Assembly: GCA_965649825.1 (NCBI GenBank)
Contig: OZ287707.1
Span: 238,192-302,191 of the forward strand
Direction: 5' to 3'
DNA from: Penicillus capitatus
Lineage: Eukaryota > Plantae > Chlorophyta
DNA: 64,000 nucleotides
Made by a program: the position numbers and the translations under genes. Below the pieces are notes generated by a model. That model did not search any database. It had not been told where the DNA came from and saw nothing but the letters and a program-made list of their open reading frames with translations. Of the stretch, positions 10,738 through 53,200 are shown in pieces. Numbering within the stretch: the first letter of the stretch is position 1; every line of letters begins with the position of its first letter.

Positions 10738-12829
10738 CTACTGCAACGACACGGGATCTAGATTCATCGATTGCGGTGCTGTTGCTGACGTCGTATCTAA
10801 AGACGGGTTGACGCTTTCCGAAACGGGCCCCGATTGAAGGCCATTATTTTTGGGCGCTGTTCTTCTTCCATGGTGACTCGGCCATCGATCAATGCCATTT
10901 CTCCGACAGGCTCTCTTCAGCGTTGTTGGACAGATACCTAAAGTTGCTGCTGCTTGCTTCAATCCCACGCCAAAATGCTTCTGAAGATCTTGGTACGTCA
11001 AGTGTTTTCCGCTTCCCATCTTCTGACGTCTTTTCTTTCGAAATTTGTTAGACGTCAATGTATGCAGAAGCTCTTCGAGTCTTTCCTTGTCCAATAGTTG
11101 ATCGTTCTCCTCTAGCGGAGGAGGAGGTGGCATCGCGTGGAACATGCTGCCTGGATTCATTTGGGCCATTCCGATCAGTCCTGGCACATTCCTTTCTTCC
11201 AAATCTACCATAGAGCCCAGCGATTCCGCAGGATCACGAAACATTGCCTCTGCAGTGTGCTGCAAAAGGGGCGTGTGCTTGGTCGACGTCACACTTGTCG
11301 CCAGAGCGGACGTGTGTCCAGGGAACAGGTGTGATTGCTGTAGTCCTACGGCATCTGCACCCAAGAACGCATGGGGGACATCCACAAGGTCCTGCGCCTC
11401 GCGTGAGCACATGTTGAACACTGGGGACATCTTCTCCCTTTCATCTAACACGTACATTACCCCCAATCACACATTCTCACTCTTTTCTCTCTATGCTCTA
11501 CCTGGAGCAGCGAGTCGACTAGGATCGTTTAAGGAAGCTAGAGTATTTGCGCCATTCATCAAATGCGGCTGTGTGACGGCGGCCATTGACATGGGATGCG
11601 TGACTTCTGTTAAGGGATGTGCACTCGCGGGGCTCGGAAAGTACTCATAGCCAACATCGAACGTGTGAAGATCGTTATCAGCTGGCCATTGCTTCAAACC
11701 TTCTTCGATCTGATCCACATCGACATCGGACGTACAAAGACTCACCGACTACAGTTCAGAAAAAGGCATCTTCAGATGCAGTGGTGATGTGACAAGTGTG
11801 ATGTCACACTTCTAAGGCCATAACGATCTTCTCCAGGAGAGACGTGAAGGAAACGCCCTTGTCGTTCTTGACCACCTCGATGACTCCCAGTGCTCGATGT
11901 CGTTGAGTCGGTTCAAAGAATGGGATCACGACGGTCGAATGCACTCGGCACCGCTGCGCCTCGCTGACGCGCAGGTAAATCTGTTTATCATACTTTTGCA
12001 CATCGCCACACATCTCCGGCTGCACATGACAGCATTGCCATTGAGAGCCGTGTACTCAATGCGACGAGGGTAACCTCTGAAGTCGTATACACGCGACCGA
12101 TGGCGCCCAGAAGACGCGGCTGCATGATATCTGTGCTGAAACTGAATCGACAGGAGATGCATCGAAAGAGTGCAAGGAGGTCGCCCACTCCAGCTACGGC
12201 ATACGGAAGGCCCTGTAACCACAGACAAACAAACATACATCACGGCAGCGTCGGGATGGCGGACGATGCTGACCTGTGTCGACAGGACCGTTCGGTTATT
12301 CCCACTCACTTCAGGCAACCACACCTACATGGACCTCTTTCGTTGTCCCCTCGAACCGTCTGGCGACGAACTTGAATCAATGACCCGTTTCGCCCGTCGG
12401 AGAGTCGATTGTTTAAGTCAAGGACGACAGTGGAGCAACGATCCCGTAAGTCGGCGGTGCACATCGCTCGCGACGTGGTAATGGATTCCGAAGCTTTTGA
12501 GTGTCCTGTTCTCCGGGGAAGGGTCCACTTTGAGGTGTCCCTCTGCAACGCTTAACGTGCATTGTCCCGTCCATCCAATCACTTATCCGCCGTCAGGGTC
12601 ACATCAACGAAATCGTCTCCTTTACAAATGGCCTGTTCAGCACCAGACTTGAACATTGGAGCTATCCCAGTACCCGTTGGATCCGTTCGACATTCCGACC
12701 CCTTTTCTTGGTTGGAAACAGACTGAGAGGTAAAAGCAACTCTTCACAAAAAGGCGAAGGAGGAAAAACTGTCTTTGTGTTGTTGGGACCATCTTCTTTT
12801 TTCCAATGCATTGTGATCAGCTTTCCCAT
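10738..12829 (-). CDS. NIN-like/NIT2-type transcription factor (GAF-like domain + RWP-RK); both ends approximate
   Basis: GAF-like segments LIQ|VWLPE, LPYAVAG, GRVYTT, VIPFFE and LGVIEVV are present. The RWP-RK domain reads LTYQDLQKHFGVGLKQAAATLGICPTTLKRACRRNGIDRWPSH. Confidence 0.88.
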
Positions 12830-14884: not shown

Positions 14885-17800
14885 ATGGGAAACCGATTGG
14901 GCAGCACATCGAATCTGCAAGCAGCGGCTGGAAGCGTCAGCGGTGTCAGCACGCACAGTCTCGAAAACACGCCTCCCCTTGTCCGGCGAACAAAGACACC
15001 CATCACGGCACCCGTCACCCCTGGGAGAAGAACCGATTCGACGGCCACAAGAGTGCGATCCGAAGAGCGTACGAGAGAAGATACTTACAGTGATGATGGC
15101 TTGGGATGCAGGGAATGTGGTTGAGTTCGATCGGCAGCGGTGTCCCCGTCGCGAGCGATTCTCAAATGCACCGTCGCAGTCGGAGCGGCTCACTGGCAGA
15201 ACAGTTTATCCACGAGATGCTCAAATTCAGACCTCCTCTGATCTGGATGCCAACCAGTCATTGCCCCCTGCCTCATATCTCGCATACAAGACAGGCAGTA
15301 TTGGGTGTTCCTAGGTGCGACAACAAATCGACAGTCGTCAGACGGAGAGGACGATAGCTGGCAGAATGTGACGAGTATGCGTGGACTGATGTGTACGGAG
15401 CATCTCTGGACAGTGGCCGGGATGCAGATGGGCCTCGGTTCAGGAGAGATGCGTCGGAGCGGATCCAATGCCATGGGCACCAGTCCGCTCTTCCAGTATC
15501 GTAACTACGAAGAGCAAGAGAGTCTGAAACTGACATCCAAAGACATTGCTGTCGTGGTCGACACCGTCTGTCGCTCCCAGTGCATCTCTGAGGAATCTGT
15601 ATGGGGCGAAATGGATGTGCACGAAATCTGGATAGCCGATTCGAACGGAGCCAAATCCATTGGCGAAGCCTGTGTGACGATTCTGATCAAATTGATCATG
15701 GATATGTATCTGGAGTATGGGCCCAGTGTGTCGTACGTTCTCGTTCTCCAGATGTTACATCAGTCCTTGCTCAATGCCGATGCCGTTGTCCGTATCCGAG
15801 CATTCGACTTGGTGTACAATCTCTCATTGCACAGTTTAATGATGTCAAACACCTCAGGAGCCTCTTTCTTTGAAAAGAGTGACGATGTCATCGACAAAGC
15901 CGCCGCCGCCAGCCATTCAGCATCGCGAGACCAGTCCTCACCAGAAAAGGCAACGACACGAAAACTGGACACGCTGAAAGAAGAGGCAGAGACGAACACA
16001 TCGCCAGACAATGTCGTTGCTCTCTGTCAGAATCGCTCGAGGTGAATGGTGTGTAGGATCCTCTCCTGCATTTGATGCCCTGGGTGCGCTCTCTGCTCTT
16101 CGATCTCATCACGCTGAGTGCACAAGTCTATCCACTCGTCGTGTCGACGTCGCTTCATGTCTGTGTGGTTTAGTTAGATGAGAAAGATGAGTCTGTCTGG
16201 TTGGCTGCTGTGGGCTGTTTCTTTCATCTGACAACAGCCAATGGAGAATTCCTACTCTCCACGCTGCAAAACTTCCCAGTCTCTGTTATTTCTAAAGCCT
16301 TGAGAATCGGCATCGAAGCCGGATGGTATATCCATATCCTGTTCTCGCGCTGACGCTTGAGATGTGACAGGTCGGATGAGATCTACTCACACCTTCTCAG
16401 ACTGCTGATCAAGCTTCTTTACGTCTCGAACAATGACAGTGCGTCTCCCCGACGAAGCAAATGCAAAGGGATCTTGATCGGTGGATGCGTGTCTAGGCAG
16501 AATCGTCAACGAAACACGTCTCAAACAGTGCGGCGGCATCGAAGAGATTCTGTTTCATCTGCGGACCACACGAAGCATGCTGGATGCCTCGTTTCTGGTC
16601 CAGCTCATTATTGACTATGCCTCACTCAAAACAAGTCTGCCATTTCACCTCAGACGGGCGCAGTGGTATTGAGAGGAGGTCCTTGTAGATGGCGGCGCAG
16701 AAGCAGCAGCACCACTGTTGACAAATTTGCTCTCCGCTTCGGCCATGGATGTCATCGTCGCTCGATGTCGACACGGAGAGAAAGGAATTGGAGATATCCT
16801 CCAAGTGGTTCTACAGAACTGCATCATCGAGAAGAACGTCCTACAAGATTCGCCAAAGAAGCCTTTCCACCATCGCTACAAATCCCAATCGTCGTTTCTC
16901 TCGAGCGAGACGCCGACATCCATCCAACCAGGCATCGATCCCGAGGCACTCGATTCATGGAGGGTCATTCTAGATGACATCGATGCGCTTTTGTGTCGTT
17001 CCTGTGTGAACACCGCAGTGCAGCAGAGGCCCTTCATCGAACTGGGCGATCCCAGAACACCTTCGACTGTCGCCTGGAACTGCCTAAAGGACTGCATGGT
17101 GAGCGACGTCCACGAAGACCGATTGGTCGGTGTGTACTGGATACGAGATTTCTCGATGTCTCGACTGCAACAACAACTCCTACAAGAAGATCGATCTCAG
17201 ATGGTACCACCCACCCACCCCTATCTCTCACTGACCCATTTCTCACTCTTTTCTCACAGTCACTGCTTCCAGAACCATCCAACTTGGAGGATACCGAGAA
17301 TGAACATGAGATGAGGGATAGTGACCGTCTTCTGAGGATACTGCATGAATGGATCGGTGTTCCGGACACGCAGGTGGGTATGGAAATGGCGATTCTGCTG
17401 GAAGAAATCGTGGCCAGATTGGTCACTCTTTCTGAGCCGTGTGATGATGCATCGCTCGCAGATCTGCCAACACGTGTCATCATCCATCGACTGGCGACGG
17501 TTCTCTTCCGCACCCTGCATTCCTTACTCCAGTGGATACGCCTCCTGCCTTTGGCCTCCAGGTCATCCCCATAGCCAAATCTGTTTCTAAGCTTGCCTGA
17601 ATGCAATGCCAATGTCTTGCAGGAGACGACCATTGCTTTCCATCAGTTTCCAAGTGTGCCAAGTCGTCCATGCGCCTCATGTTATGTCCGATCTCTCGAC
17701 GGTGCCTTCTCTCGACGGTTTCACTTCTCTGCCTGGCCCCTTCATCTACAATGAGTATATCTTTGGCACCGGATACGTCTATGTACGTCTTCTCCGGACG

Positions 17801-39966: not shown

Positions 39967-40916
39967 ATGGCAACCGGCTGCATCGAAGCTATCCGAAAAT
40001 GGACGCGTGCTCTCTTGGCGACGGCAAAACAGAACGGCTACAACTGGCTGTGTTTCTGTATCCTAATGGCCGTCGAGGTCGTGTTGGAGGAAACGATGAA
40101 ACCAACGGCGCGCTATCTCTCGCCCAGTGAATGGGATGACGTCCAATATCCGAAGAAGAGCGAAACTGTGCCGCCGAGCTGGGTGTTTGTTATCGGGCTG
40201 GCTGTTCCTATCGTGGTTGTCACGTTGTATCACTTTCTGTATGGCTGTGAGATTCGAGAATATCACGACCTCCTGTTTGGCATTGTTATGAATGTGGCTC
40301 TCACGGGCGTTACGACAGACGTGTTGAAGACCGCATTGGGTCGCCCGCGTCCGGACTTCTACGAACGGTGTTTTGGACACACCTATGATGGCACAGAAAT
40401 ACTTGCCACGGGACGAAAACCGGACTGCACAAACACAAACGAAAGCACCATAGAAGAGGGCAGGAAGAGCTTTCCGAGCGGTGAGGGGTTTCATCATGCA
40501 TCGTGTGTGTGACGATGATCATGTTCACAGGACACGCTTCTCTGTCGATGTGCTCCATGTTTTTTCTAACGCTTTTCGTCATCGGAAAATTGCATGCCTT
40601 CGATGGGAAGGGTCATGCATGGAGGTGGATCGTGAGTCTGCTGCCGATCGGCGTCAGCGTTGCCGTCGGTGTCACACGCATTCTCGACTACCGACACTTC
40701 TGTACAGATGTATTGTCTGGATGGTGTCTGGGTATTGTATTTGCTACGATACTGTATCTGACATACTATCCATGGCCCTTTGCCAAGACTGGAACATCAA
40801 CTCCGCTCTACAAGGCATCCGATCAAGTTCAGAGTCGAAATCACATTCATTTAGAGAGTGAAGCAGAAAATGACATAGAACATGAAGGTATACAGCTTCT
40901 GTCCATGACTCTCTGA
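39967..40916 (+). CDS. Lipid phosphate phosphatase (PAP2/LPP family)
   Basis: The C1 motif KTALGRPRPDF, C2 motif SFPSG|HAS and C3 motif TRILDYRHFCTDVLSG are present, with about 6 TM segments. The start could instead be 39927. Confidence 0.92.
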
Positions 40917-40979
40917 CAAACCGTTACCCCATTTGACTCGAACACAGCCAGAGATCGGACTCCAGAAGATGGTATCGTG

Positions 40980-40984
40980 TGTAA
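40980..40984 (+). promoter_or_regulatory. TGTAA polyadenylation signal (LPP 3' UTR)
   Basis: TGTAA lies 64 nt after the LPP stop. Confidence 0.5.
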
Positions 40985-41013
40985 CGATGTTCCTATTGTC
41001 TTTAGGCGTCCCT

Positions 41014-41750
41014 CTAAGGAGCGAGTGGTACGAAACGCCGTAGTCTGTCGCCTTTTCCTTTCAAGCTGTACATGTCCGAACAAACTTGTCGGTGGTTGTT
41101 GCATGTAACTGGTTTGCTGGGCGCCGTCGAGCATGGCACCATTCCGGACTGCGTTTCAGCAAAGGAACTGGCGATACTGCCAATCATGCCACACAGGATG
41201 CCGGATGCTATGATGTGACGTGGATTTCCCGATGGCATGGTTGCCAATCCACCTGTCAGACATCCAGCGATCAGGGCATTGTACTACAGCAACGGCGATG
41301 GCGTCTGCTCGAATCCTGTGAACAGATGGGGATGTACCTTGTCTTGCTTGCCGCGAATTTTCTCCGAGGTGCAGCTCAGGATGCTCAAGAAACCAAAGAA
41401 CGAACCAAAAGACCAGGCAGCGCGTCCACAATTCTGAACCTACACACATTTAACCTCGCTCTCTTCACTCTTGATGCCAATATCAGGCAGATCAACAGAC
41501 CCTCGATCTCAACCGTTCCAATCGCCGAACTGAGAACAGAGCCGCGTTTGGCGTCGGATCGGCGCAACGAAGCCGTGTCTGTACTTGATGCTTCAGATGC
41601 GGTTGGTGGGACGTAGAGTCCCCATGCAGATCCCACCTGTGGTTCATATCCTTGGGGTCACGAGAAGTGCGCCGCACTTGCCATGGCGCCGCGTATGAAT
41701 CCATCGACGAACCGAGAATCGCACGGAATCGAGAACTGCTGTTCGACCAT
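41014..41750 (-). CDS. Tim17/Tim22/Tim23-family membrane protein
   Basis: The spliced model reads MVEQQFSIPCDSRFVDGFIRGAM|VGSAWGLY...|VQNCGRAAWSFGSFFGFLSILSCTSEKIRGKQDK|YNALIAGCLTGGL.... The first intron (41637-41681) is GC-AG with donor G|GCAAGT. Confidence 0.75.
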
Positions 41751-41899
41751 CTAGTTTCATGCCGTACAGCGTCAGATGCAGGAATTGGCAATGCGTCTTT
41801 ACATGAACAGATGTCTCAATGACGCGCATTCCTGCCTCAATTAAAACACAACCCTATCCTTTGATCGAATCAGCTGCACTGGAAGCACATCTCTCTCAC

Positions 41900-43570
41900 C
41901 TAACGACCGAACTCCTGGACATCTTTGAGATGATTCTTGTTGAATGCATCTTCGACAGAGTGGATATTGTCATGTCACAATTGTCGAGTTTAAGGACTGA
42001 GGTTGGCTGTCATTGATCGAGATGATCTCTGGCGTGTTCTCCTGTGCAGCAGATGTTGATCGATCGACATTCCGCTTATTTTTCTGAAGCGATAGTGAAT
42101 ATCTGCCGCCTTATGCAATTGGATATTTCGTCGATTCGTTTCCTCTTTAATCGTTAGCTGGAGACAAGAGTACGTCGCTCTTAGCGATGCGAAACGTCTC
42201 GCACTGAAGCCTTGGAGACATTCAACGAAGCCCGACAGGTAACTCCACTTCCCCATTACCGACCGGCACATGCCTATCACTTGTTATATCAAACATTACT
42301 CAAAAGGACGATGACCTGTCTCTCACTCCCACAGCTTTTTCCTGTCCATGCACACATGGTCGGTGCCCTCAAGCATCCATGATCCCGTAGCGATCCTGAA
42401 TTCCATAGAATATGCATTCGACATGTATGTTAGCGGTGTGAGATGTAACAGCCATACCATGAATTCCTGTTCTGTCTTTGAGAATGCTGAATCGATCTTG
42501 TGCACGGAAGCTATGTCTGCTCTCCATTCTCGCAAAACTAGGTCAAATGATCATCTCCTCTGGTGATGTGACAGGAGAGTTCTACTCTCTTTTTCTTCTT
42601 CCGAAAGGAAGCTCTCGGCCGTTTCTGGAGAGAACTCTGTCTCGGCAATCTCTTCTTCGTTCGCGATCGCCTGAATGAGATGCTCAAATCGATCATGCTG
42701 CACTCGCTGCAAGAACTGATTCAGGTCCTCTTCCTCCGTACTACAGACGCAACAGCACGATGAGATCCATGGTTCACAGTTACGGAGCCGTGCATGCTGG
42801 CCAGTCGATGACCGAGTCTGTAGAAAGCCGGATGCACATCGTTGAGGTTGAACACAGTCACACTTTCGAGAATGAGTGCTCGTGCTCTGCAGAGAAGAGA
42901 AGAGTGAGATGATCATGTGACAGAAAGACAGGAGGACTCTTTGTCGTATCCGGCAGGATAGCGTTCCAGGTTCACCTTCGATGCCAACCTCTCCACAAGC
43001 TTCAACGGCAGCTTCAGTCGCCTTCCCTCTGCAATCTGCATGACTCGGCACTGATCTCATTCCAAAGTGCATTGAAAGGAGTTTACACGGATCTCTTGAA
43101 CCGAGGCCCCCTTTTCTGTTCTGACGTTCAGACAACATAAAAAGAATCACTCGTCTCCAAGGTATATAAAGAGGCAATGAACTCACTTCATGTGCTCCTT
43201 CACTTCCGCTGTCTCTTCCTCTGTCAGTTCTTCTCTGGTCATCACGTGAAGCATCTCACGATTCCCATTTTCATTTGCATTGGTAACGAATGACAAACTC
43301 ACAGTGGACGAGACAGCTTCGTAGGCGGTCTTCCCTGCAGAGGTCCCAAATCGGCCCTTGGCTTCATCACCGTCCTGTTAACAGCAGTTTGAATCTTGGA
43401 GATCCCCCACAACGAACTTGATTCTCTGAGTCGATGAGTTCTTTCATCTCATCCCATGTCGTGCTCTGTTTGAGATCGAAGTCAGAATCCAGCTGAGTTA
43501 CACTCTCGTTCATGCATCGTAGGAAAGAGATTTCACACGTGTGACAGAAACGCATTGCGATGCCGAACAT
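41900..43570 (-). CDS. Hypothetical multi-exon protein (3' end approximate)
   Basis: A chain of intron-separated open frames includes TTWDEMKELIDSENQ|DGDEAKG, EEEDLNQFLQRVQHDRFEHLIQAIANE, YSMEFRIATGSWMLEG and RRNIQLHKAADIHYRF. No family was recognised. Confidence 0.45.
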
Positions 43571-44206
43571 GCGTTTCGTTCCATATCTGACACATCAGCT
43601 TCAGCACGCATTGGCTCTGAATGAACACCAATCGTGTTCGTCGCCGTTATGCTGGACTTTCGTCACGCCTCATGTTCCGTCGGCGTCTTCTGTTTAAGAC
43701 CGACCATTGACGTTTCGTGTCGTACTTCGAGATCTGCAAGATGTCAGTCAGGAGAGAGAAACCCGTTCGTGGGACGACAGGATATTGAAGTATGGTCATG
43801 AAGACCATGTATTTTTAATCCGTATTCGGTTGTGATAGAACCCACTTTGTTCTTCCACTGATCAATTGTGCTGATTGAAACAGGGATCATTTTTATGCGA
43901 TGTAGACAGGCAGACTCTTGTGCCGAAGGCTATGTCCACAACCAGAGAAGAGAGTGTTCAAATATTCCAACCAGACTGTCTCACCATCCAGATAACTATC
44001 TACTCAGCAGTATTGAAGTGAAGTCACTGCATCAGAGAAGATACGTCAAATCAATCTCCATCGACTGAGTTTCCCCGCCGACACGGACCTCCTGCTCATT
44101 ATCTCCATCGCGAACTCAAGTGCGAAGTTTTGCGACGGCAGGTATGCTTGCAGGTTACGGTGCGCTTCTCCTGACGAGGTGGTGTTGCGCAGACTACGAA
44201 AACAAC

Positions 44207-47200
44207 ATGCAGCCTCGAGCTCCGGATGAAGGACCAAGCAGCGGCGGACCATCCGCATCGAGAATTCGGGGTCGACCGGACGTCGAGCGCTCTGTCTTTA
44301 AGAAACGCTACGACCCGAAGCTCTTGCGTGGTGTCGCACACAAGTGCAATATCGACAGTACCAAGTCGCTAGTCGCGGCATACAACGCAGCGACGGCTGA
44401 AGACGAACGTGCTGTCCTGCTTGGATGGCTGTGCAAGTATCACGAACGAAGCGCAGACTGTCTGACCCCTGAAAATGTCATCGAGTACGCGGAACTAGCC
44501 AACATCGCCCCACTTTCTACAAGCGAGAAGGACATGTTGAGAGATCTGATAGGCGGCCTCACTTCTTGCATCTGCGAAGGAAGCTTCCTGCATCCGAGCT
44601 TCGCTGCTGCCCTCTACAGTGCACTTGTGCACGTCGATCCTTCCGCGTACGACGACGCTGAGCAACTGGTCGTCGTGGCGAGAAGACTCTTGGGCAGTCT
44701 TACTCGAGAGCCGAAGCTCACAAGGAGAACCTTTGCGAAGCATGAAGCGACGTTTTTTGCCCTCCACCAGACCTTCTTCCTGCTTCGCGAAGCCAATCAG
44801 AAACAGATACATGAAAAAGAGAAGCAGGAGTTGCGTAGAATCATTGCAGAGAAAGAGAGAACTATGAAACTCTCATGCAGGCACTATCCGGTCAATTTCC
44901 ATTTCAAAGCGCTTCGTCAGGCGGTGGAACGCCTCAAAGACGAAGACGCTGCTTCAAGAACCGCACAGGCGACTCAGTATGCCATGTGTTTATTGTGTGG
45001 ATTCGTGCACGTCCTACATTTTCTCAGAAATCTGGCAAGATGCGACATCGATCCGGAGGCCTTCGTAGATGCGTACCAAAGAAATCGAGAAGCAATTGAT
45101 GACATAGAAGTGGCGAAGCGACCGTGGTTCGACCGCTTACGAAGCCTGATGGCGAAGAGATTAGAAGCGTCGGAGAACGAAACGAAGCTCGGAGTTTTCG
45201 GGTCCGAGTTTCACGCTGCAATGGAATCGCAACAAAGGATGATAAAAAAAGAAGACTTGAAGGCACTTAGATTCGGCATCATCCAAGAGCTGAGGCTGTC
45301 GGCGAGGCAGACCGCTTGCGAAGCTGTGCGCAAAGAGGTTGCGACGAAGCTACTGATGCTAGCAACAAGTCGTGCAATCTTCGAAGAGTGGTTCGACGAT
45401 AAGGACCTCTTTACAGCGTTCTTGGATGCTCTACATGAAATCCACACAAGGAGTGACCAAAACCAAGAAACGACTGAAGCGTTCCAGCGAATGCAACAGT
45501 CTTGTGAGGGTCGTGCCGCAAGCACGTTGAAAGCGTGGTTAGGTGGTCATGCTATGGAAACCAAGCTCAAAATGCGAGATCGACAAGAAACATGCGCGGA
45601 GTACAACACGGTCTTTGTCGAGATTGCTCGGGAAGTCGGATACGTTCCCCTAAACAAGATTCGGTCTAACATTAAAGATCTGAAAGACAAATACAAGCAT
45701 GACAACTTCGCCAAAGTGAGTAGTCACTTTAGTAGTGTATCGACTACATTATGATCATGCTCGTTTCTCAGGTACCTTCTTTGTTTGGAACCGAAGTCGG
45801 ATATCACGTCAAAGAAATGGAGCATTATGTCGTCGAGTACGAAGAAAACATCGACGGGACGACGACCAAAAGAAGAGAAGACCGAGCACACGAGGGGGAA
45901 GCAGAGTATTCGTTAACTCAGAAAAGAGATCATCCACAGGAACACTACAAACAGAAGAAAAAAGTCACAAAGCCCATCTCCTTGGAGGAATTGTTCAAAC
46001 CAAGACATTTGATACCCGGCGGTTCAGAAAGCGAAGTCAGAAAGGTTCTTCTCTATGGAAATCCCGGCTCCGGAAAAACGTGCATCGGCAAAGCCATCGC
46101 GCATAAGTGGGCATTGGGAGATATCATGCAAGAGTTCGAAGCAATCTACGTCATCCCGATCAGACGCGTCAACGTCGCAAAGTTTAAAGGCCCGCAAGGT
46201 GTAACGTTGAAAGGCATGGTTGCACAAGTATGCTTCCCTGAGAGAATCGATGATAAATATGAAGACCTCTTGAATCAAGTGGAAGGCGACCTCGACTCTC
46301 CTACCACGCTGTTGATTTTCGACGGATTAGATGAAGCTGCCGACGACGCAAGAGAGCTGGTTTGTGCAGCGACGGAGCGTCTGTGCAAGTTACTGATATT
46401 AGCAAGGCCCTACAACCTTCGACGGATACGAGAGAGGGTCGAACGCGAGTTTGAATGCCTTGGGTTTAATGACCAACAGTTGACAAACTACATAAGCAAA
46501 AAACTTCAACAAGACGAAGCTTTGAGACTTATTCGTTCTTTGCAACAAGAACGGAGCTTGTGGGAAATCGCACATAATCCGGTAACGGCGCACATTCTCT
46601 GCTCTTTGTCGAGAGAACATGGAACTTCTAATGAGAATCGAGGGAGAAGCGCGAGCATGTTTAAGATCTACGACGATATGACGAACTTTTTATGGGAGAG
46701 GTTCGAAGAAGAGCCCGCGGCAAGAATGGCGATCAAAAATGTCTTTTTTGAAGATCTGGAGAAGATCGCCTTCGAGGCTCTGAGTAATGGACAAATATTA
46801 ATCGAAGAACGGACCGTTAAGAGTCATGCAACGTTCACAAACACGTCCGAAATCTTCAGAGGAAGTGGATTCCTCTTACTCGTTCTAGAAGGACAAGCGT
46901 ATCAGTTTCCTCATCTCACATTCCAGGAGTTTTTTGCTGGAAAACACATTGCCAAATGCTTGAAGAACAAAGGATCGAAAGAAGAAGAACAAGTACTAAA
47001 GTTCATTCAAGAAGGAAAATACAATCAAAAACATGCCATGACACTTTCTTTCGCAATGCATGCATTTGCAAAAGGACAAAATAAGCATGGGTTGCAAAAG
47101 ATGCTATCGATTGTCGATGAAGAACCGGTCGAAGTGCTAGGGATACAGCATTTCTTGTTGAAAATGCGAGTTCTTGAATGTATCCTAGAAGAAACTGATG

Positions 47201-50200
47201 AAAAAAACTTGGAAGACGTTCTAAAGGATGCACAAGCAATCAAGCTCGCTCAAGGTGCTTGCCAGCTGATCGAGCAAACGGTCGACGACGTTATGATCCG
47301 TGAAATCGTGATCAAAGAGTTCCAACACATGTCTTCCGTTTTGGAAGGATTTCCTCAGGTTCTCAATGGCACCATCGACAAAGTGAAGAAGCTGCTGGCC
47401 TTCTCGCAAGAGTTAACGTCAATGCAAATGGACAAAATCACAGATGTCTTGAAGCTCGCAAGACACGCTCCGAAGCACAGTTACGGGGTTACCTTGTTCA
47501 TCTTGCAGCTAGCGGAAATACCTGAGGGTTGGTGCAGTCGAAAAGAACGAATCAGAAGGCTTGGTTCACTCGCAAAACAAATGCCTCAGCACGTCGTTGA
47601 CTTTCTGCCGATGCTGGAGAGAGGCAGCGTCGGCAAAGACTCGGAAGTGCGCAAGGCGGCGTTCGATGCCATCGGGGTCGTCGTCTCGGCGGCGCCCCAG
47701 CACGCTGGCAATGTACTGCCGATCTTGGTTAAGGGGTGCGTCGACGAATACTGCGCTGTGCGTCAAGCAGCGATGGCGGCGATTGGCAGTGTCGTTGCAA
47801 CGGCGCCTCAACACGCCGACAAATATCTGCCGACGCTGGTTAAGGGGTGCGTCGACGCAAACTGCGTTGTGCGTCAAGCAGCGATGGCGGCGATTGGCAG
47901 TATCCGCGCGGCGGTGCCTCAACACGCTAGAGAGGTCCTGCCGATCTTGGTGAAGGGGTGCGTCGACAAAGACTCCGACGTGCGTCAATCGGCGATGGTG
48001 GCGATTGGCAGTGTCGTCTCGGCGGCGCCCCAGCACGCCGGCGATGTACTGCCGATCTTGGTTAACGGGTGCAATGACAAAGACTCCGACGTGCGTCAAG
48101 CGGCGATGGTGGCGATTGGCAGTGTCGTCGCGGCGGCGCCTCAACACGCCGGCGAGGTTCTTTCGACGCTGGCAAAGAAGTGCGGCGACGGAAAGTGGGC
48201 CATGCGTAAAGAAGCGATAACAGCGATTGGCAGTATCGTCGTAAAGGAGCCTCAACACGCCGACGAATCTCTGCCGACGCTGGTTAAGGGGTGCGTCGAC
48301 GAAAACTGCGTTGTGCGTCAAGCAGCGATGGCGGCGATTGGCAGTATCCTCGCGGCGGTGCCTCAACACGCTAGAGAGGTTCTGCCGACGCTGATTGAGG
48401 GGTGCGTCGACATAAACTGGAACGTTCGTAAGGCGGCGATTGTGGCGATTAGCAGTGTCGTCGTGGCGGCGCCTCAACACGCCGGCGATGTACTGCCGAC
48501 GCTGGCAAAAGGATTCGGAGACGAAGACATGGGCGTACGTCGAACGGCGATGGAGGCCATCGAGATTTTTTTCCAGATATTAACGAGTATCGCCGGCGGC
48601 GTGATGCCGCTGCCAAAAGGAGAATGTAAATATGGAAAATATGGGGCATGCCAGGATGTGACGGAAGTCTTGAAGAAAGCTGCCGAAGAACCGTTGAAGC
48701 TCGAAGGCGATCTGTTTCGAGTACTTGTGAATGGCTGTCTGGATGAAGACATTGGTGTACGCCATAAAGCAATGGACGTCATTGGGAGAGTTGTGCGGCC
48801 CCCTTCGCTTGTTGCGCGTCATCTTAAGCCAATGTTGAAGAGAGAGGGCAGAAGCAAAAACTCCCATGTACGCAGAAATGCGATGGAGGCTATTGAGAGC
48901 GTCGTGAAGGCAGCGCCACATTCTGCAGTGGATTTTTTGCCAGTATTAAAGACGGGATGTCGTGATGAAGCTTCCTACGTGCGTACAAACGCGATAAAAG
49001 CCATTGGGAATTCCGTTAGTGTTGCACTTGACGTCGCGAATGAGCTTTTGTCGATCCTGGACAAAGGGCATGCCGACGAAGATTCTGACGTCCGTGGGTC
49101 TTATATAGAAGCCATCGGCAACATCGTTAGTGTTGCGCCCCACCTCGCTTCCGGTCTGCTACGAAGGCTGACGGAAGGTAGCAGGGATAAGCACTCCGAC
49201 GTGCGCTGCACTGTGATGGAAACTGTTTCAAAATTCACAGAAGCGGAAACGAGTCTCGCAGCCAGCCTATTGGAAATTCTGAAGACTGGGTTCGAAGACG
49301 AGTCCTCAAGCACGCGCCGGAGTGCAATCAAGGGCATTGGAAGCTTCGCAGAGATGGCCCCACTCCTCGCTAACGACTTATTGGAATTGCTGAAGACAAG
49401 GTTCAGTGGCACATCTTTTAACGTGCGCCAAGATGCCGTCGATGCTGTTGTGAGCATTGTCAAAGTGGAACCGCGCCTTACGAGTAGCATTAAGAAGATG
49501 ATAGAAAAAGAGTACGAAGATGAAAGTTCTGATGTTCGTGGGAACTCGATTGAAGCGATCGGGAGAATCATCACAGCATCACCGAACATCGCCAACGACT
49601 TCCTCCCTCTGCTAAAACGAGGGTGCGACGACGAAGACTCTGATGTCCGAGCTTATGCAATCGAGGCCCTCGGTAGCTTCTACGGGGCGTCGCCAATCCT
49701 CGCGCCCGCTCTTCTACCAATGTTAGAAAAAGCTTGTGGCGATGAAGACGTCGACGTACGCCAGAATGCCGTGCTTGCCATCGGAAACATCGTAATTTCG
49801 AAACCAAACACTGCAGTCGATTTGCTGCAAAAACTAAAAGAGATGTGCGTTGACCGAAGCTCCACCGTGCGTTGCAATGCAATCGAGACCGTGGTGACCT
49901 TCGCTAAAGCGGCGACGGGCCTCGATGCAGATTTGGTGCCCTTACTAGTCCAAGGGTGTGACGACAATACATTCAGAGTGCGCCGGTCGGCAATGGATGC
50001 AATCGGAAACGTCGTCATATCAGTTCCGCAAATTAGTGGTGATCTCTTTCCGATGTTGGAAAGAGGGTGCGGTGACAGAGCCTTCCACATACGTTGTAAG
50101 GCAATAAAAGCAATAGGGAGCATGGGAAAGGCAACGCCGAACCTCGCGGACAGTTTGCTGCAATTATTGGAGCCGTCATTACAAGACACAACATCCTCTA

Positions 50201-53200
50201 GAATTCGTCAGAAGGCAACAGAGGCTTCCGGGAGTATCTTAGCAGTGACCCCTGAACTCTTAAGCAAGTATCTGCCAATACTGACGAGAGGTTGTGAAGA
50301 CACAAACTCCGGCGTGCGCCAAAATACGATCGATGCTATGAGGAATATCATCAAAGCCGCGCCGTCGTTCGCACAAAGCCTGAGAAACATGGTGGAAGAA
50401 GGTTGCAGAGATGAAGACTCAAAAGTGCGCTGCGAAGCGATGGCGACCGTTAAGAGCATCATCGATGTAGCACCATCATCCTCACACGGTTTGCGAGGGA
50501 TAGCCAGAAAGGGGTGCACAGATGAAGATTTCAAAGTGCGTCAGAATGCGATAGAAGCGATTGCGATCATCACGAAGGCAATAACGCCACATCTTCTCGA
50601 AGATTCTATTTTGATGCTTAACAAAGCTTGCATTGACGAGGCCGCCGATGTTCGCCAAGCTGCAATAGAATCCATTCAAAGCGTCGTCTCTATGGTGCAA
50701 TGCTCAGCACTCAAAGCAGAAGGTGCGCTGAAAAGAGAATGCCGCGAAGACAAATCTGCCATCTACGGGAGTAAAGTGAAGACCGCTTGGCACGTTGTCT
50801 CGACGTTTCATCGCTTCTTCAACGAGATTCTGCCGACGCTTGTTAAGGGGTGCGACGACAAAGACTCCGACGTGCGTCAAGCAGCTATGACGGCGGTCGG
50901 CAGTACCCTTGCGGCGGCGCCTCAGCCAGCCGGCCAGATTCTGCCAACGCTGGTTGAGGGGTGCGTCGACAAAGACTCCGACGTGCGTCAAGCAGCTATG
51001 ACGGCGACTGGCGGTATCGTCGCGGCGGCGCCCTATCACGCAGGCGATGTTCTGCCGACGCTAGTGGCGAGGTGTAGCGACAACGCGTCCGACGTGCGTC
51101 AAACAGCGATGGCGGCGGTCGGCAATATCGTCGTGGCGGCGCCTCAACACGCCGGCGATGTTATTCCGACGCTGGTCGGGGGGTGCGTCGACATAAACTG
51201 GAACGTGCGTAAGGCGGCGATCAAGGCCGTCGGTCGCATCGTCTTGGCGGCACCGCAACACGCCGGCGAGGTTCTGACAACGCTCAGGAGGGGGTGTGTC
51301 GACGATGAATGGGACGTGCGTGAGAAGGCGTTTGAAGCAATCGGTCGCGTCTTCGCGGCGGTGCCTCAACACGCTAGAGAGGTTCTGCCGACGCTGATTG
51401 AGGGGTGCAACGACAAAGACTCCGACGTGCGTCAAGCGGCGATGGCGGCGATTGGCAGTGTCGTCGTGGTGGCGCCTAAACTCGCCGGCGAGGTTCTGCC
51501 GACGCTGGCAAAGAAGTGCGGCGACGGAAAGTGGGCCATGCGTAAAGAAGCGATAACAGCGATTGGCAGTATTGTCGTGAAGGAGCCTCAACACGCCGAT
51601 GAATCTCTGCCGACGCTGGTTAAGGGGTGCGTCGACGAAAACTGCGCTGTGCGTCAAGCAGCGATGGCGGCGATTGGCAGTGTCGTTGCAACGGCGCCTC
51701 AACACGCCGACGAATCTCTGCCGCCGCTGGTTGAGGGGTGCGTCGACGAAAACTGCGTTGTGCGTCAAGCAGCGATGGCGGCGATTGGCAGTTTCCTCGC
51801 GGCGGTGCCTCAACACGCTAGAGAAGTTCTGCCGACGCTGGTTGAGGGGTGCGCCGACAAAGACTCCGACGTGCGTCAAGCAGCTATGACGGCGACTGGC
51901 GGTATCGTCGCGGCGGCGCCCTATCACGCAGGCGATGTTCTGCCGACGCTAGTGGCGAGGTGTAGCGACAACGCGTCCGACGTGCGTCAAACAGCGATGG
52001 CGGCGGTCGGCAATATCGTCGTGGCGGCGCCTCAACACGCCGGCGATGTTATGCCGACGCTGGACGGGGGGTGCGTCGACATAAACTGGAACGTTCGTAA
52101 GGCGGCGATCAAGGCCGTCGGTCGCATCATCTTGGCGGCACCGCAACACGCCGGCGAGGTTCTGCCAACGCTCAGGAGGGGGTGTGTCGACGATGAATGG
52201 GACGTGCGTGAGAAGGCGTTTGAAGCAATCGGTCGCGTCTTCGCGGCGGACATTCATCACGCCGGAGAGGTTCTGCCGACGCTGATTGAGGGGTGCAACG
52301 ACAAAGACTCCGACGTGCGTCAAGCGGCGATGGCGGCGATTGGAAGTGTCGTCGTGGTGGCGCCTAAACTCGCCGGCGAGGTTCTGCCGACGCTAGTTGC
52401 GAAATGTTCCGACAAAGCATCCGATGTGCGTCAAGCAGCGATGGCGGCGATTGGCAATGTCGTCGCGTCGGCGCCTTATCACACCGGCGAGGTTCTGTCA
52501 AGGCTGGCAGTGGGGACCGGAGACGAAAACTGGGCCGTGCGTCAAGCGGCGATGGCGGCGATTGGCAATGTCGTCGTGGAGGCGCCTCACCACTCCGACG
52601 ATCTTCTGCCGACGCTGGCAGTGGGGACCAGAGACGAAAACTGGGTTGTGCGTCAAGCGGCGATGGCGGCGATTGGCAGTGTCGTCGTGGTGGCGCCGCA
52701 CCACGCCGGCGAGGTTCTGCCGACGCTAGTTGCGAGGTGCATCGACAAAGCATCCGACGTGCGTCAAGCAGCTATGTCGGCGGTCGGCAGTATCGTCGTA
52801 AAGGAGCCTCAACACGCCGGCGATGTTCTGCCGACACTGGTTGAGGGATGCGGCGACAAAGACTCCGACGTGCGTCAAGCAGCTATGACGGCGATTGGCA
52901 GTATCGTTTCCGATTCATCGCACAACCTGAGCGTACTGTTGCAGTTATTGAGGAGAGGATGCAATGACGAAAACTTTTACGTTCGACAGAATGCGATTAA
53001 AACCGTCGGCAAGACTTTCGAAAAGAAACAGTACCTCGCAGACCAACTGCTGCCGATGCTAGAGTCTGGATGTGCGGACATAGACTTCTTTGTTCGCCAA
53101 AATGCGTTAGAATCTGTTTCTGAGATCGTTATAGCTGCTCCGCACCTCGCTGGCCGATTGCTAATGTATCTTTATGGAGGGTGTACCGACAACGTCTATT

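Follow-up and report, generated by a model that had tools for sequence, protein, structure and literature searches.

Two recombining zones around a stable core in the HEAT array of a giant NLR-like gene from the green alga Penicillus capitatus

We have analyzed a repeat array in a 64,000-nucleotide stretch of the genome of the green alga Penicillus capitatus (contig OZ287707.1, positions 238,192 to 302,191 of the forward strand), referred to here as the window. A first-pass annotation, made without database searches, had flagged positions 47716-52938 of the window as 111-bp HEAT units that are shuffled as cassettes. This region is the C-terminal, repeat-built sensor solenoid of a giant NLR-like (NACHT) gene of the STAND class. 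In two zones of the solenoid, called A and C, the units resemble other units of the same gene more closely than they resemble those of related genes; the ~2.2-kb core that sits between the zones takes no part in the exchange. Our overall reading is that the array is the sensor end of the gene, that its units are duplicated, patched and homogenized by recombination in the two zones, and that this turnover probably feeds non-self sensing. We consider this reading likely, though well short of certain. The features on which it rests are collected in Table 1.

Table 1. Features of the array gene and of its downstream neighbour, in window positions. GC3, GC content at third codon positions.
Feature	Positions	Strand	Basis or remarks
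Exon 1, N-terminal domain, ~503 aa	44207..45715	+	translation; family-specific
Intron, 56 nt, GT-AG (GTGAGT...TCTCAG), phase 0	45716..45771	+	sequence, frame arithmetic
NACHT NTPase module and helical linker	45772..47604	+	Pfam PF05729
Zone A, 9 HEAT units of 111 bp (A1-A9)	47605..48603	+	unit table, identity matrix; GC3 0.69
Stable core: degenerate linker, M1-M17 and two degenerate units (~19 diverged units)	48604..50829	+	GC3 0.52
Zone C, 19 HEAT units (C1-C19)	50830..52938	+	GC3 0.68
Five-unit cassette, copy 1 (C2-C6)	50941..51495	+	540/555 identical to copy 2
Short conversion patch, 15 nt	51362..51376	+	7 of the 15 cassette differences clustered here
Five-unit cassette, copy 2 (C10-C14), 888 bp downstream of copy 1	51829..52383	+	540/555 identical to copy 1
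Block T, ~6 diverged HEAT units, this gene only	52939..53592	+	comparison with relatives
Last degenerate unit, then C-terminal tail (...LVMHASSSHEIGNW...KFSGLLETL) and stop codon	53593..53910	+	family alignment
Tandem neighbour paralogue: N-terminal domain, NACHT and tail, no detectable HEAT array	55022..58940	+	Pfam, alignment

Gene structure and domain organization

The flagged interval is contained in an intact gene of two exons (44207-53910, forward strand), the spliced coding sequence of which measures 9,648 nt and has 3,215 codons with a single terminal stop. Its second exon carries an open reading frame (ORF) of 2,719 codons (45751-53910, forward strand) that runs uninterrupted for ~8.1 kb and spans the entire interval. 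The start codon at 44207 was picked by analogy with the neighbouring gene; the frame itself is open from 44120. The reading frame changes between the two ORFs because of a GT-AG intron, which is found at the same position in the paralogue L001 (56 nt) and in the corresponding locus of a sister genome (53 nt). The 544-codon ORF at 44120-45754 was rejected as a separate gene, since the intron joins it in frame to VPSLFG.... A bacterial or operon reading, suggested by the ATGA overlap of the two ORFs, was likewise rejected, since the window contains split eukaryotic genes and the intron explains the change of frame.

The predicted product has the tripartite layout of NLR proteins, with an N-terminal domain, a NACHT NTPase and a superstructure-forming series of ~54 HEAT units of 37 amino acids (aa), and ends in a conserved tail. 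The NACHT domain matches PF05729 with 52.5 bits against a cutoff of 26.7 (~46042-46509, residues 91-246 of exon 2) and contains both STAND/NLR motifs, Walker A (GNPGSGKT, 46057-46080) and Walker B (LLIFDGLDE, 46309-46335). The repeats match the Pfam entries PF02985 (E 1.6e-169, 533.6 bits) and PF13646 (436 bits). An AlphaFold2 (AF2) model of units C2-C9, with a predicted local distance difference test score (pLDDT) of 93, consists of regular two-helix units; helix B occupies unit positions 13-29, the turn positions 8-12, and helix A positions 31-37 together with positions 1-7 of the next unit. The pairing of antiparallel helices, a unit length at the lower end of the 37-47 aa usual for HEAT, a D/R turn signature and the Pfam matches identify the units as HEAT repeats.

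The N-terminal domain is novel and all-alpha. It has no Pfam match at thresholds up to E<=1, AF2 predicts helices only (pLDDT 76.5), and a Foldseek search of the PDB gave no match at E<1e-3 but a generic likeness to helical repeats, with a template modelling (TM) score of ~0.2. At the other end of the protein, the C-terminal tail of ~70 aa is common to family members with and without HEAT units and may be a capping or regulatory module. Its consensus, from window positions 53776-53907 and the C-termini of the products P0001-P0057, reads ...LHTTSSxEIGKWxKDDxDxFVGxLRREFxEKFPGLLxHL.

Layout of the array

Tandem Repeats Finder (TRF) reports 111-bp arrays at 47680-48505 and 50823-52907. We cut the whole array into in-frame units, which gave A1-A9, a degenerate linker, M1-M17 with two degenerate units, C1-C19 and T1-T6. 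Mean DNA identity among units is 71-73% in A and C and ~48% in M and T. In zone A, each of the units A2-A8 has a counterpart elsewhere in the gene, mostly in zone C, to which it is 84-97% identical; A1 and A9 are older. No origin for block T was found among the sampled relatives, none of which exceeds 60% DNA or 42% amino acid identity to it.

Nine unit types can be named. In zone C, units C2-C9 follow the order a-b-c-d-e-f-g-h, C10-C14 are a-b-c-d-e again, and C15-C18 are mosaic variants. In zone A, A2 is of type g, A3 and A7 are of type h (94-97% identical to C9), A6 is of type f and A8 is c-like. The type order is f-g-h in zone C, and g-h and f-h in zone A. Two antisense ORFs inside the array (47566-48480 and 51061-51927, reverse strand; 304 and 288 aa) most likely arise from the periodicity of its GC-rich codons and are not genes.

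Duplications, mosaic units and gene conversion

The five-unit cassette that had been noticed in zone C does recur: its two copies are offset by 888 bp (8 x 111) and are 97.3% identical, and beyond the bounds of the cassette identity drops to 54-81%. The 888-bp duplication begins and ends within the conserved start of a unit. This is compatible with the earlier proposal of exchange at constant DNA tracts, breakpoints being placeable only between variable sites. The other reported repetition also held up, the pair of units at 48160-48381 being found again ~3.3 kb away at 51496-51717 with 203 of 222 nucleotides identical (91.4%). Unit by unit, A6 matches C7 (95%), A7 is nearer to C9 (96%) than to C8 (87%), and it is A2 that matches C8 (95%). 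The separation of the two copies is as described, but what lies between the zones is not a run of 20 divergent repeats; it is the conserved core of ~19 units plus the degenerate linker.

Individual units are mosaics. As the first-pass annotation had stated, there are two exact copies of a 54-nt tract, at 48352 and 51355. The unit at 52717 (C18), which had been singled out as a join of two unit types, is indeed a mosaic, with a C3-like head (60/68) and an f-type tail (35/37 to A6), but clearer ones exist. The head of C5 is that of C13 (77/78) and its tail is that of A7 (32/33), while A8 combines a head identical to C6 (16/16), a middle from C12 (41/42) and a tail from C3 (34/36). Nearly half of the differences between the two cassette copies are concentrated in a 15-nt patch (Table 1), within which C5 exactly reproduces the tail of A7 (from 48352); this C5 tail is found only at 48352 and 51355. 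The patch is the signature of a short conversion tract.

Two statistical tests support exchange among the units. The pairwise homoplasy index (PHI) gave p<0.0005, and still p<=0.0013 when one site per codon was kept. In a test for identical runs, 6 of 268 unit pairs scored P<1/5000 and passed Bonferroni correction. In this gene, as in the three related long genes introduced below, zones A and C have GC3 values of 0.64-0.81, compared with 0.52-0.58 for the core and 0.44-0.54 for NACHT; GC-biased gene conversion would give such a rise. Divergence is 2.7% between the cassette copies and 3-5% within A-to-C pairs; overall, copies are 1.5-5% diverged.

The mosaics could also be explained without conversion, as parallel substitutions under selection combined with tandem duplication only. 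Repeat proteins do have constrained consensus positions, at which some shared states are expected. This explanation is hardly credible here, as the shared tracts are identical in DNA, synonymous sites included (54 nt exactly, 41/42 and 32/33, in units that are otherwise 60-70% identical), and the seven clustered differences within 15 nt copy another unit exactly. In addition, the PHI signal persists with one site per codon, and GC3 is raised in the exchanging zones only.

Concerted evolution in two zones

The array was compared with those of three related long genes. Gene H (L005), the closest relative, comes from the same sample, on another contig, and has a product of 1,988 aa; S (L003/L004) is the syntenic gene of the sister genome (1,969 aa); L006 is on the same contig as the window (1,913 aa). 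The product length here is 2,719 aa, so that the relatives are 731-806 aa (~20-22 units) shorter. The shared flank is 94-100% identical in H and ~88% in S. A scan of Joint Genome Institute (JGI) metagenomes found no further copies. For each unit of the window gene, the best ungapped match was taken in its own gene and in each of the three relatives.

Core units are one-to-one collinear in all four genes, with unit DNA identities of 57-99%, and they find their best match in a relative, at the collinear position (means 0.74-0.80, up to 0.99), as against 0.56 in their own gene. For A2-A8 and C1-C19, the match within the gene is ~0.77-1.00 versus 0.61-0.77 in the relatives; the means for zones A and C are 0.88 and 0.93 in the own gene versus 0.68-0.74 in the three relatives. 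The pattern is reciprocal in H, which has a unit type of its own, GDGD[SP]FVRRNAMEAIGRVV, in both its A and its C zone, with unit hA3 98% identical to hC5. The A units of L006 match C units of the same gene at 94-95%, and in S the pair of units at position M3 (M3a/b) reaches 83-89% identity with the C zone of S itself. Thus concerted evolution is limited to two zones that exchange across a stable core, as seen in four genes with the core as internal control. The zones vary in size (A + C units), with 9+19 in the window gene, 7+8 in H, ~3+~10 in S and 3+~6 C-type units in L006.

Two further rearrangements were seen in the relatives. In L006, ~2.5 core units are duplicated with 100% identity 888 nt apart (~15210-15432 and 16098-16320; aa 1230-1304 and 1526-1600); an 8-unit (888-nt) offset is thus seen in both L006 and the window gene, whether by chance or through a preference for this register. 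In the sister gene (L004, aa ~1011-1040), a threefold micro-duplication of ~10 aa (FAKMVPHLAN FAKMVPHLAN FAEMVPQLAN) lies inside core unit M6.

Tandem arrays are known to be prone to misassembly, and some paralogue products end in a frame-shifted translation of the repeat, so that mis-threading of near-identical repeats must be considered as the source of these patterns. We find this very improbable. The copies of the cassette differ at 15 sites and hence can be told apart, and the 8.1-kb frame has been kept. Four loci that were assembled independently, from two samples, all show the zone layout, the A-to-C sharing and copied cassettes. Long-read assembly, in which reads would span the 5.9-kb array, is suggested for the related loci by their contig names alone.

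Exchange between loci

Aligned with gene H, the window gene and its upstream flank (window 40538-50829, L005 6413-16458) form a patchwork with sharp changes of identity. Identity is 94-100% from 40538 to ~45040, which includes the first 830 nt of exon 1, and 79-85% in the rest of exon 1, with synonymous divergence (dS) of 0.19 in the N-terminal exon. It is 76-78% in NACHT (dS 1.0), ~70% in zone A, 93-99% in M2-M5 (48826-49269; dS 0.05) and 63-86% in M6-M17 (dS 0.49); past the stop codon there is no similarity between the two loci. Coverage of the two loci is 45x against 39x, and synteny breaks inside the PAP2 gene. H may be a paralogue, a homeologue or the corresponding gene of a second strain in the same sample.

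Gene S was rejected as a plain orthologue, its N-terminal domain and NACHT being 48% and 61% identical as against 88% for the flanks. These identities do not match the flanks, and the locus is therefore chimeric or has been replaced. The mismatch in S and the patchwork with H together indicate that the genes are chimeras produced by kb-scale exchange among paralogues. Exchange between loci is evident at this scale, as in M2-M5, although units of zones A and C are shared at no more than 77% (A1 83%). Recent sharing of highly conserved units with the paralogues L001 and L002 was rejected, since identity to them reaches at most 76%. Divergence between the cassette copies and between A-to-C pairs is below most of the divergence from H (dS 0.19-1.0), yet comparable to that of the closest segments. 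The events in the zones may therefore precede or follow the duplication that separated the two genes.

Mechanism and role of the turnover

We propose that zones A and C, by keeping near-identical DNA in strict 111-bp register, can pair out of register. Unequal crossing-over then adds or drops whole in-frame units, as in the five-unit, 888-bp duplication, and short-tract gene conversion (~15-60 nt) pastes pieces of units, also between A and C over the 2.2-kb core. The outcome, evident on an evolutionary time scale, is concerted evolution, by which each gene has its own unit types, order and number, with the core remaining collinear. By analogy with fungal NLRs of high internal conservation (HIC), the turnover would probably supply new binding surfaces for a non-self sensor, and the NACHT switch would trigger the N-terminal domain once a ligand had bound. 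The first-pass annotation had drawn a parallel with the exchange of repeat units in fungal NLRs. An NLR-type protein, duplication and exchange in 111-bp register and concerted evolution all support that parallel. The adaptive "specificity generator" that it also included finds no such support in the window gene, the turnover itself being real.

Selection was measured as the ratio of nonsynonymous to synonymous divergence (dN/dS) by the method of Nei and Gojobori (NG86). The ratio is 0.75 for the A and C units and 0.27 for the core, where dS is saturated. A value of 0.99 was obtained at codons picked post hoc, which is circular. For an independent choice of sites we turned to alphaRep, binders of which are among the best PDB sequence matches of the array (E 1e-10 to 1e-16). 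The randomised binding face of the alphaRep design, which we take to be unit positions 13, 14, 17, 18, 21 and 25, all in helix B, defines six a-priori codons, and at these dN/dS is 0.38 in the window gene. The same codons give 0.72 in S, 0.60 in L006, 2.06 in H, 1.66 in L001 and 3.99 in L002. The values above 1 in H, L001 and L002 compare with 0.5-0.7 in the rest of the unit; they come from small counts, their significance is untested and recombination confounds them. Taken together they suggest diversifying selection across the family, with the window gene below 1.

Several observations weigh against our overall reading. Positive selection is not apparent in the window gene, pairwise NG86 values never exceeding 1. 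Variation among its units is spread over 23 of the 37 positions, with no small set of hypervariable sites. Measured for HIC, the two copies of the cassette (185 aa) are 97% identical in DNA and the mean identity of units to their consensus is 0.72 at the amino acid level (A2-A8 and C1-C18; 0.86-0.89 in H). The gene can on this basis be counted among HIC NLRs, although the value of 0.72 sits at the border of the published thresholds, which are >85% over >=100 aa (Dyrka 2014, PMC4986451) and Psim >= 0.7 (the 2026 Podospora study, PMC13449251). No A or C unit is more than 77% identical (A1 83%) to sampled paralogues, and the genes compared throughout are paralogues or come from related species, and are not alleles of one species. 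Neither Pfam nor Foldseek links the N-terminal domain to anything known, and an immune role is assigned by analogy.

These points lead to the most serious alternative, that recombination is real but a passive by-product under relaxed constraint, with no role in specificity. The contrast of 0.75 in A and C with 0.27 in the core fits relaxation as well as it fits diversifying selection. The low ratio at the helix-B codons and the diffuse variation also agree with a passive process, and frame-shifted arrays in several paralogues suggest decay. We nevertheless think it unlikely. The 2,719-codon frame has come through repeated rearrangement intact, and an 8.1-kb frame that stays open across a recombining array speaks for a functional gene. 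Some 30 paralogues retain very similar units, the combination of NACHT with repeats is a receptor architecture, and helix-B ratios of 1.7-4.0 in H, L001 and L002, of untested significance, stand against 0.5-0.7 elsewhere in the unit.

Finally, the variation could be generated within an individual, among nuclei or cell lineages, by a dedicated programmed or somatic mechanism. The points in its favour are all indirect, namely the cassette-like organization, the two zones exchanging around a fixed core, and the 8-unit offset in two genes. A recent study (PMC13449251) raises the idea for the receptors of brown algae as well as for the HIC NLRs of Podospora. Such a mechanism is most improbable here, all events being fixed between paralogues or related loci and the copies being 1.5-5% diverged, which is the evolutionary scale. 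No recombinase lies nearby, and neither flanking signal sequences nor a silent donor array is present; what serves as donor is expressed sequence of this one ORF. A more specific version, in which the zones form a self-contained cassette system with frequent exchange within the individual, in mitosis or between nuclei and possibly in an 8-unit register, and yield an adaptive-like HEAT repertoire, is very doubtful as well. We retain recombination in two zones of a probable non-self sensor, over evolutionary time, as the preferred reading.

Host, gene family and neighbourhood

A fungal origin of this DNA, implied by the first-pass annotation, was rejected. A cysteine-desulfurase-like gene of the window is closest to green algae, its best named relatives being Bryopsis, Coccomyxa and Ostreobium at ~50% identity. 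Split genes of the window encode PP2C, RecQ, RWP-RK, PP2A-A, an ABCA-type transporter, MCM, dUTPase and NFU, and the RWP-RK DNA-binding motif in the ORF at 10738-11466 (reverse strand) fits a host of the green lineage. Scans of the window for tRNAs and Rfam families gave no matches.

The gene belongs to a family on the order of a hundred NACHT genes in one algal lineage, many of them with internally conserved HEAT arrays. Searches gave ~60 relatives of the NACHT region, at 34-73% identity, and 96 homologues of the N-terminal domain, all of them ENA proteins on long contigs. A typical member has 750-1,050 aa and 8-12 HEAT units. Adjacent HEAT units are 60-100% identical at the protein level in ~30 paralogues, and such high identity between neighbours is a family trait. 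The products P0002, P0003, P0012, P0015 and P0023 have arginine-rich ends that are the HEAT unit read in another frame; frameshifts inside paralogue arrays may reflect pseudogenes, unrecognised introns or assembly indels. The tandem neighbour paralogue (Table 1), beginning 1.1 kb downstream of the array gene, has ~400 aa without annotation between NACHT and tail. Retroelement fragments adjoin NLR genes in related loci (L004 6350-7246 and L005 21345-21611; rve integrase, RVP/gag-asp protease).

Comparison with known systems

Concerted evolution, reshuffling of repeats and polymorphism of repeat number are described for the WD40, ANK and TPR repeats of fungal HIC NLRs (PMC4986451; PMC13449251). 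The HNWD/NWD genes of Podospora (het-e, het-d, het-r) resemble the window gene in having NACHT followed by conserved tandem repeats, concerted evolution and changes in repeat number. Their repeats form a WD40 beta propeller, whereas those here form a HEAT alpha solenoid, and they carry a HET or other N-terminal domain where the alga has a novel one. In the Podospora genes, whose host is a fungus, a few surface positions are documented to be under positive selection and paralogues to exchange repeats. A further difference is that the window gene has its dynamic repeats in two zones, one on either side of a stable core. Membership in the HNWD family was rejected, Pfam finding neither HET nor WD40, and the window gene is an analogue rather than a member. 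Compared by architecture, Pa_6_7270 of Podospora (sesB-like/NACHT/HEAT), which has 3-12 repeats among strains (Dyrka 2014, PMC4986451), shows the same mix of NACHT and internally conserved HEAT units. It is a single fungal gene with a sesB lipase-like N-terminus, as against ~54 units and a ~100-member family here. The 2026 survey of Podospora lists one HIC HEAT gene (PMC13449251).

For the NB-ARC-TPR and LRR-ROCO candidate receptors of brown algae (Zambounis et al. 2012; Teng et al. 2023, 2024), repeat shuffling, birth-and-death evolution and "weak HIC" are summarised in PMC13449251. These are also algal receptors of STAND or related type with shuffled repeat modules, but each repeat is a separate exon that is subject to exon shuffling and alternative splicing, and they differ in their NB-ARC or ROCO domains, their repeat types and their stramenopile hosts. 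Exon shuffling of this type was rejected for the window gene, in which the array is one continuous 8.1-kb open frame.

The alphaRep proteins and natural HEAT-like (PBS/EZ-type) repeats share with the window gene the two-helix unit and the D-x-D-x-x-V-R turn; alphaRep proteins differ in being designed, in having units of 31 rather than 37 aa and in lacking an NTPase, and the variation found here exceeds their binding face. In plant NLR clusters such as maize Rp1 and flax L/M, LRR-coding DNA undergoes unequal crossing-over and gene conversion. Their paralogues are likewise clustered and chimeric, as in the succession of segments 100%, 79%, 76%, 99% and 75% identical between the window gene and H. 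Plant NLRs, however, combine NB-ARC with LRR, and LRR units are rarely near-identical within one gene.

Significance

We found no description of NACHT-HEAT genes of green algae in the literature. In green algae NACHT has been reported only with WD40 repeats, in Chlamydomonas (PMC4773052), and chlorophyte algae have been described as poor in intracellular immune receptors (PMC13315243). A HIC NACHT-HEAT gene is already known in Podospora; what is new here is the lineage, the N-terminal domain, the size of the family, the 54-unit array and the layout of two zones plus a core. A non-recombining core and two recombining zones within one frame form a natural control for separating the effects of recombination, namely concerted evolution and raised GC3, from the history of the gene. 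The novel N-terminal domain is a candidate for a new signalling or cell-death module. If these proteins are receptors, then a source of specificity based on repeats plus recombination would have evolved independently in fungi, brown algae and green algae.

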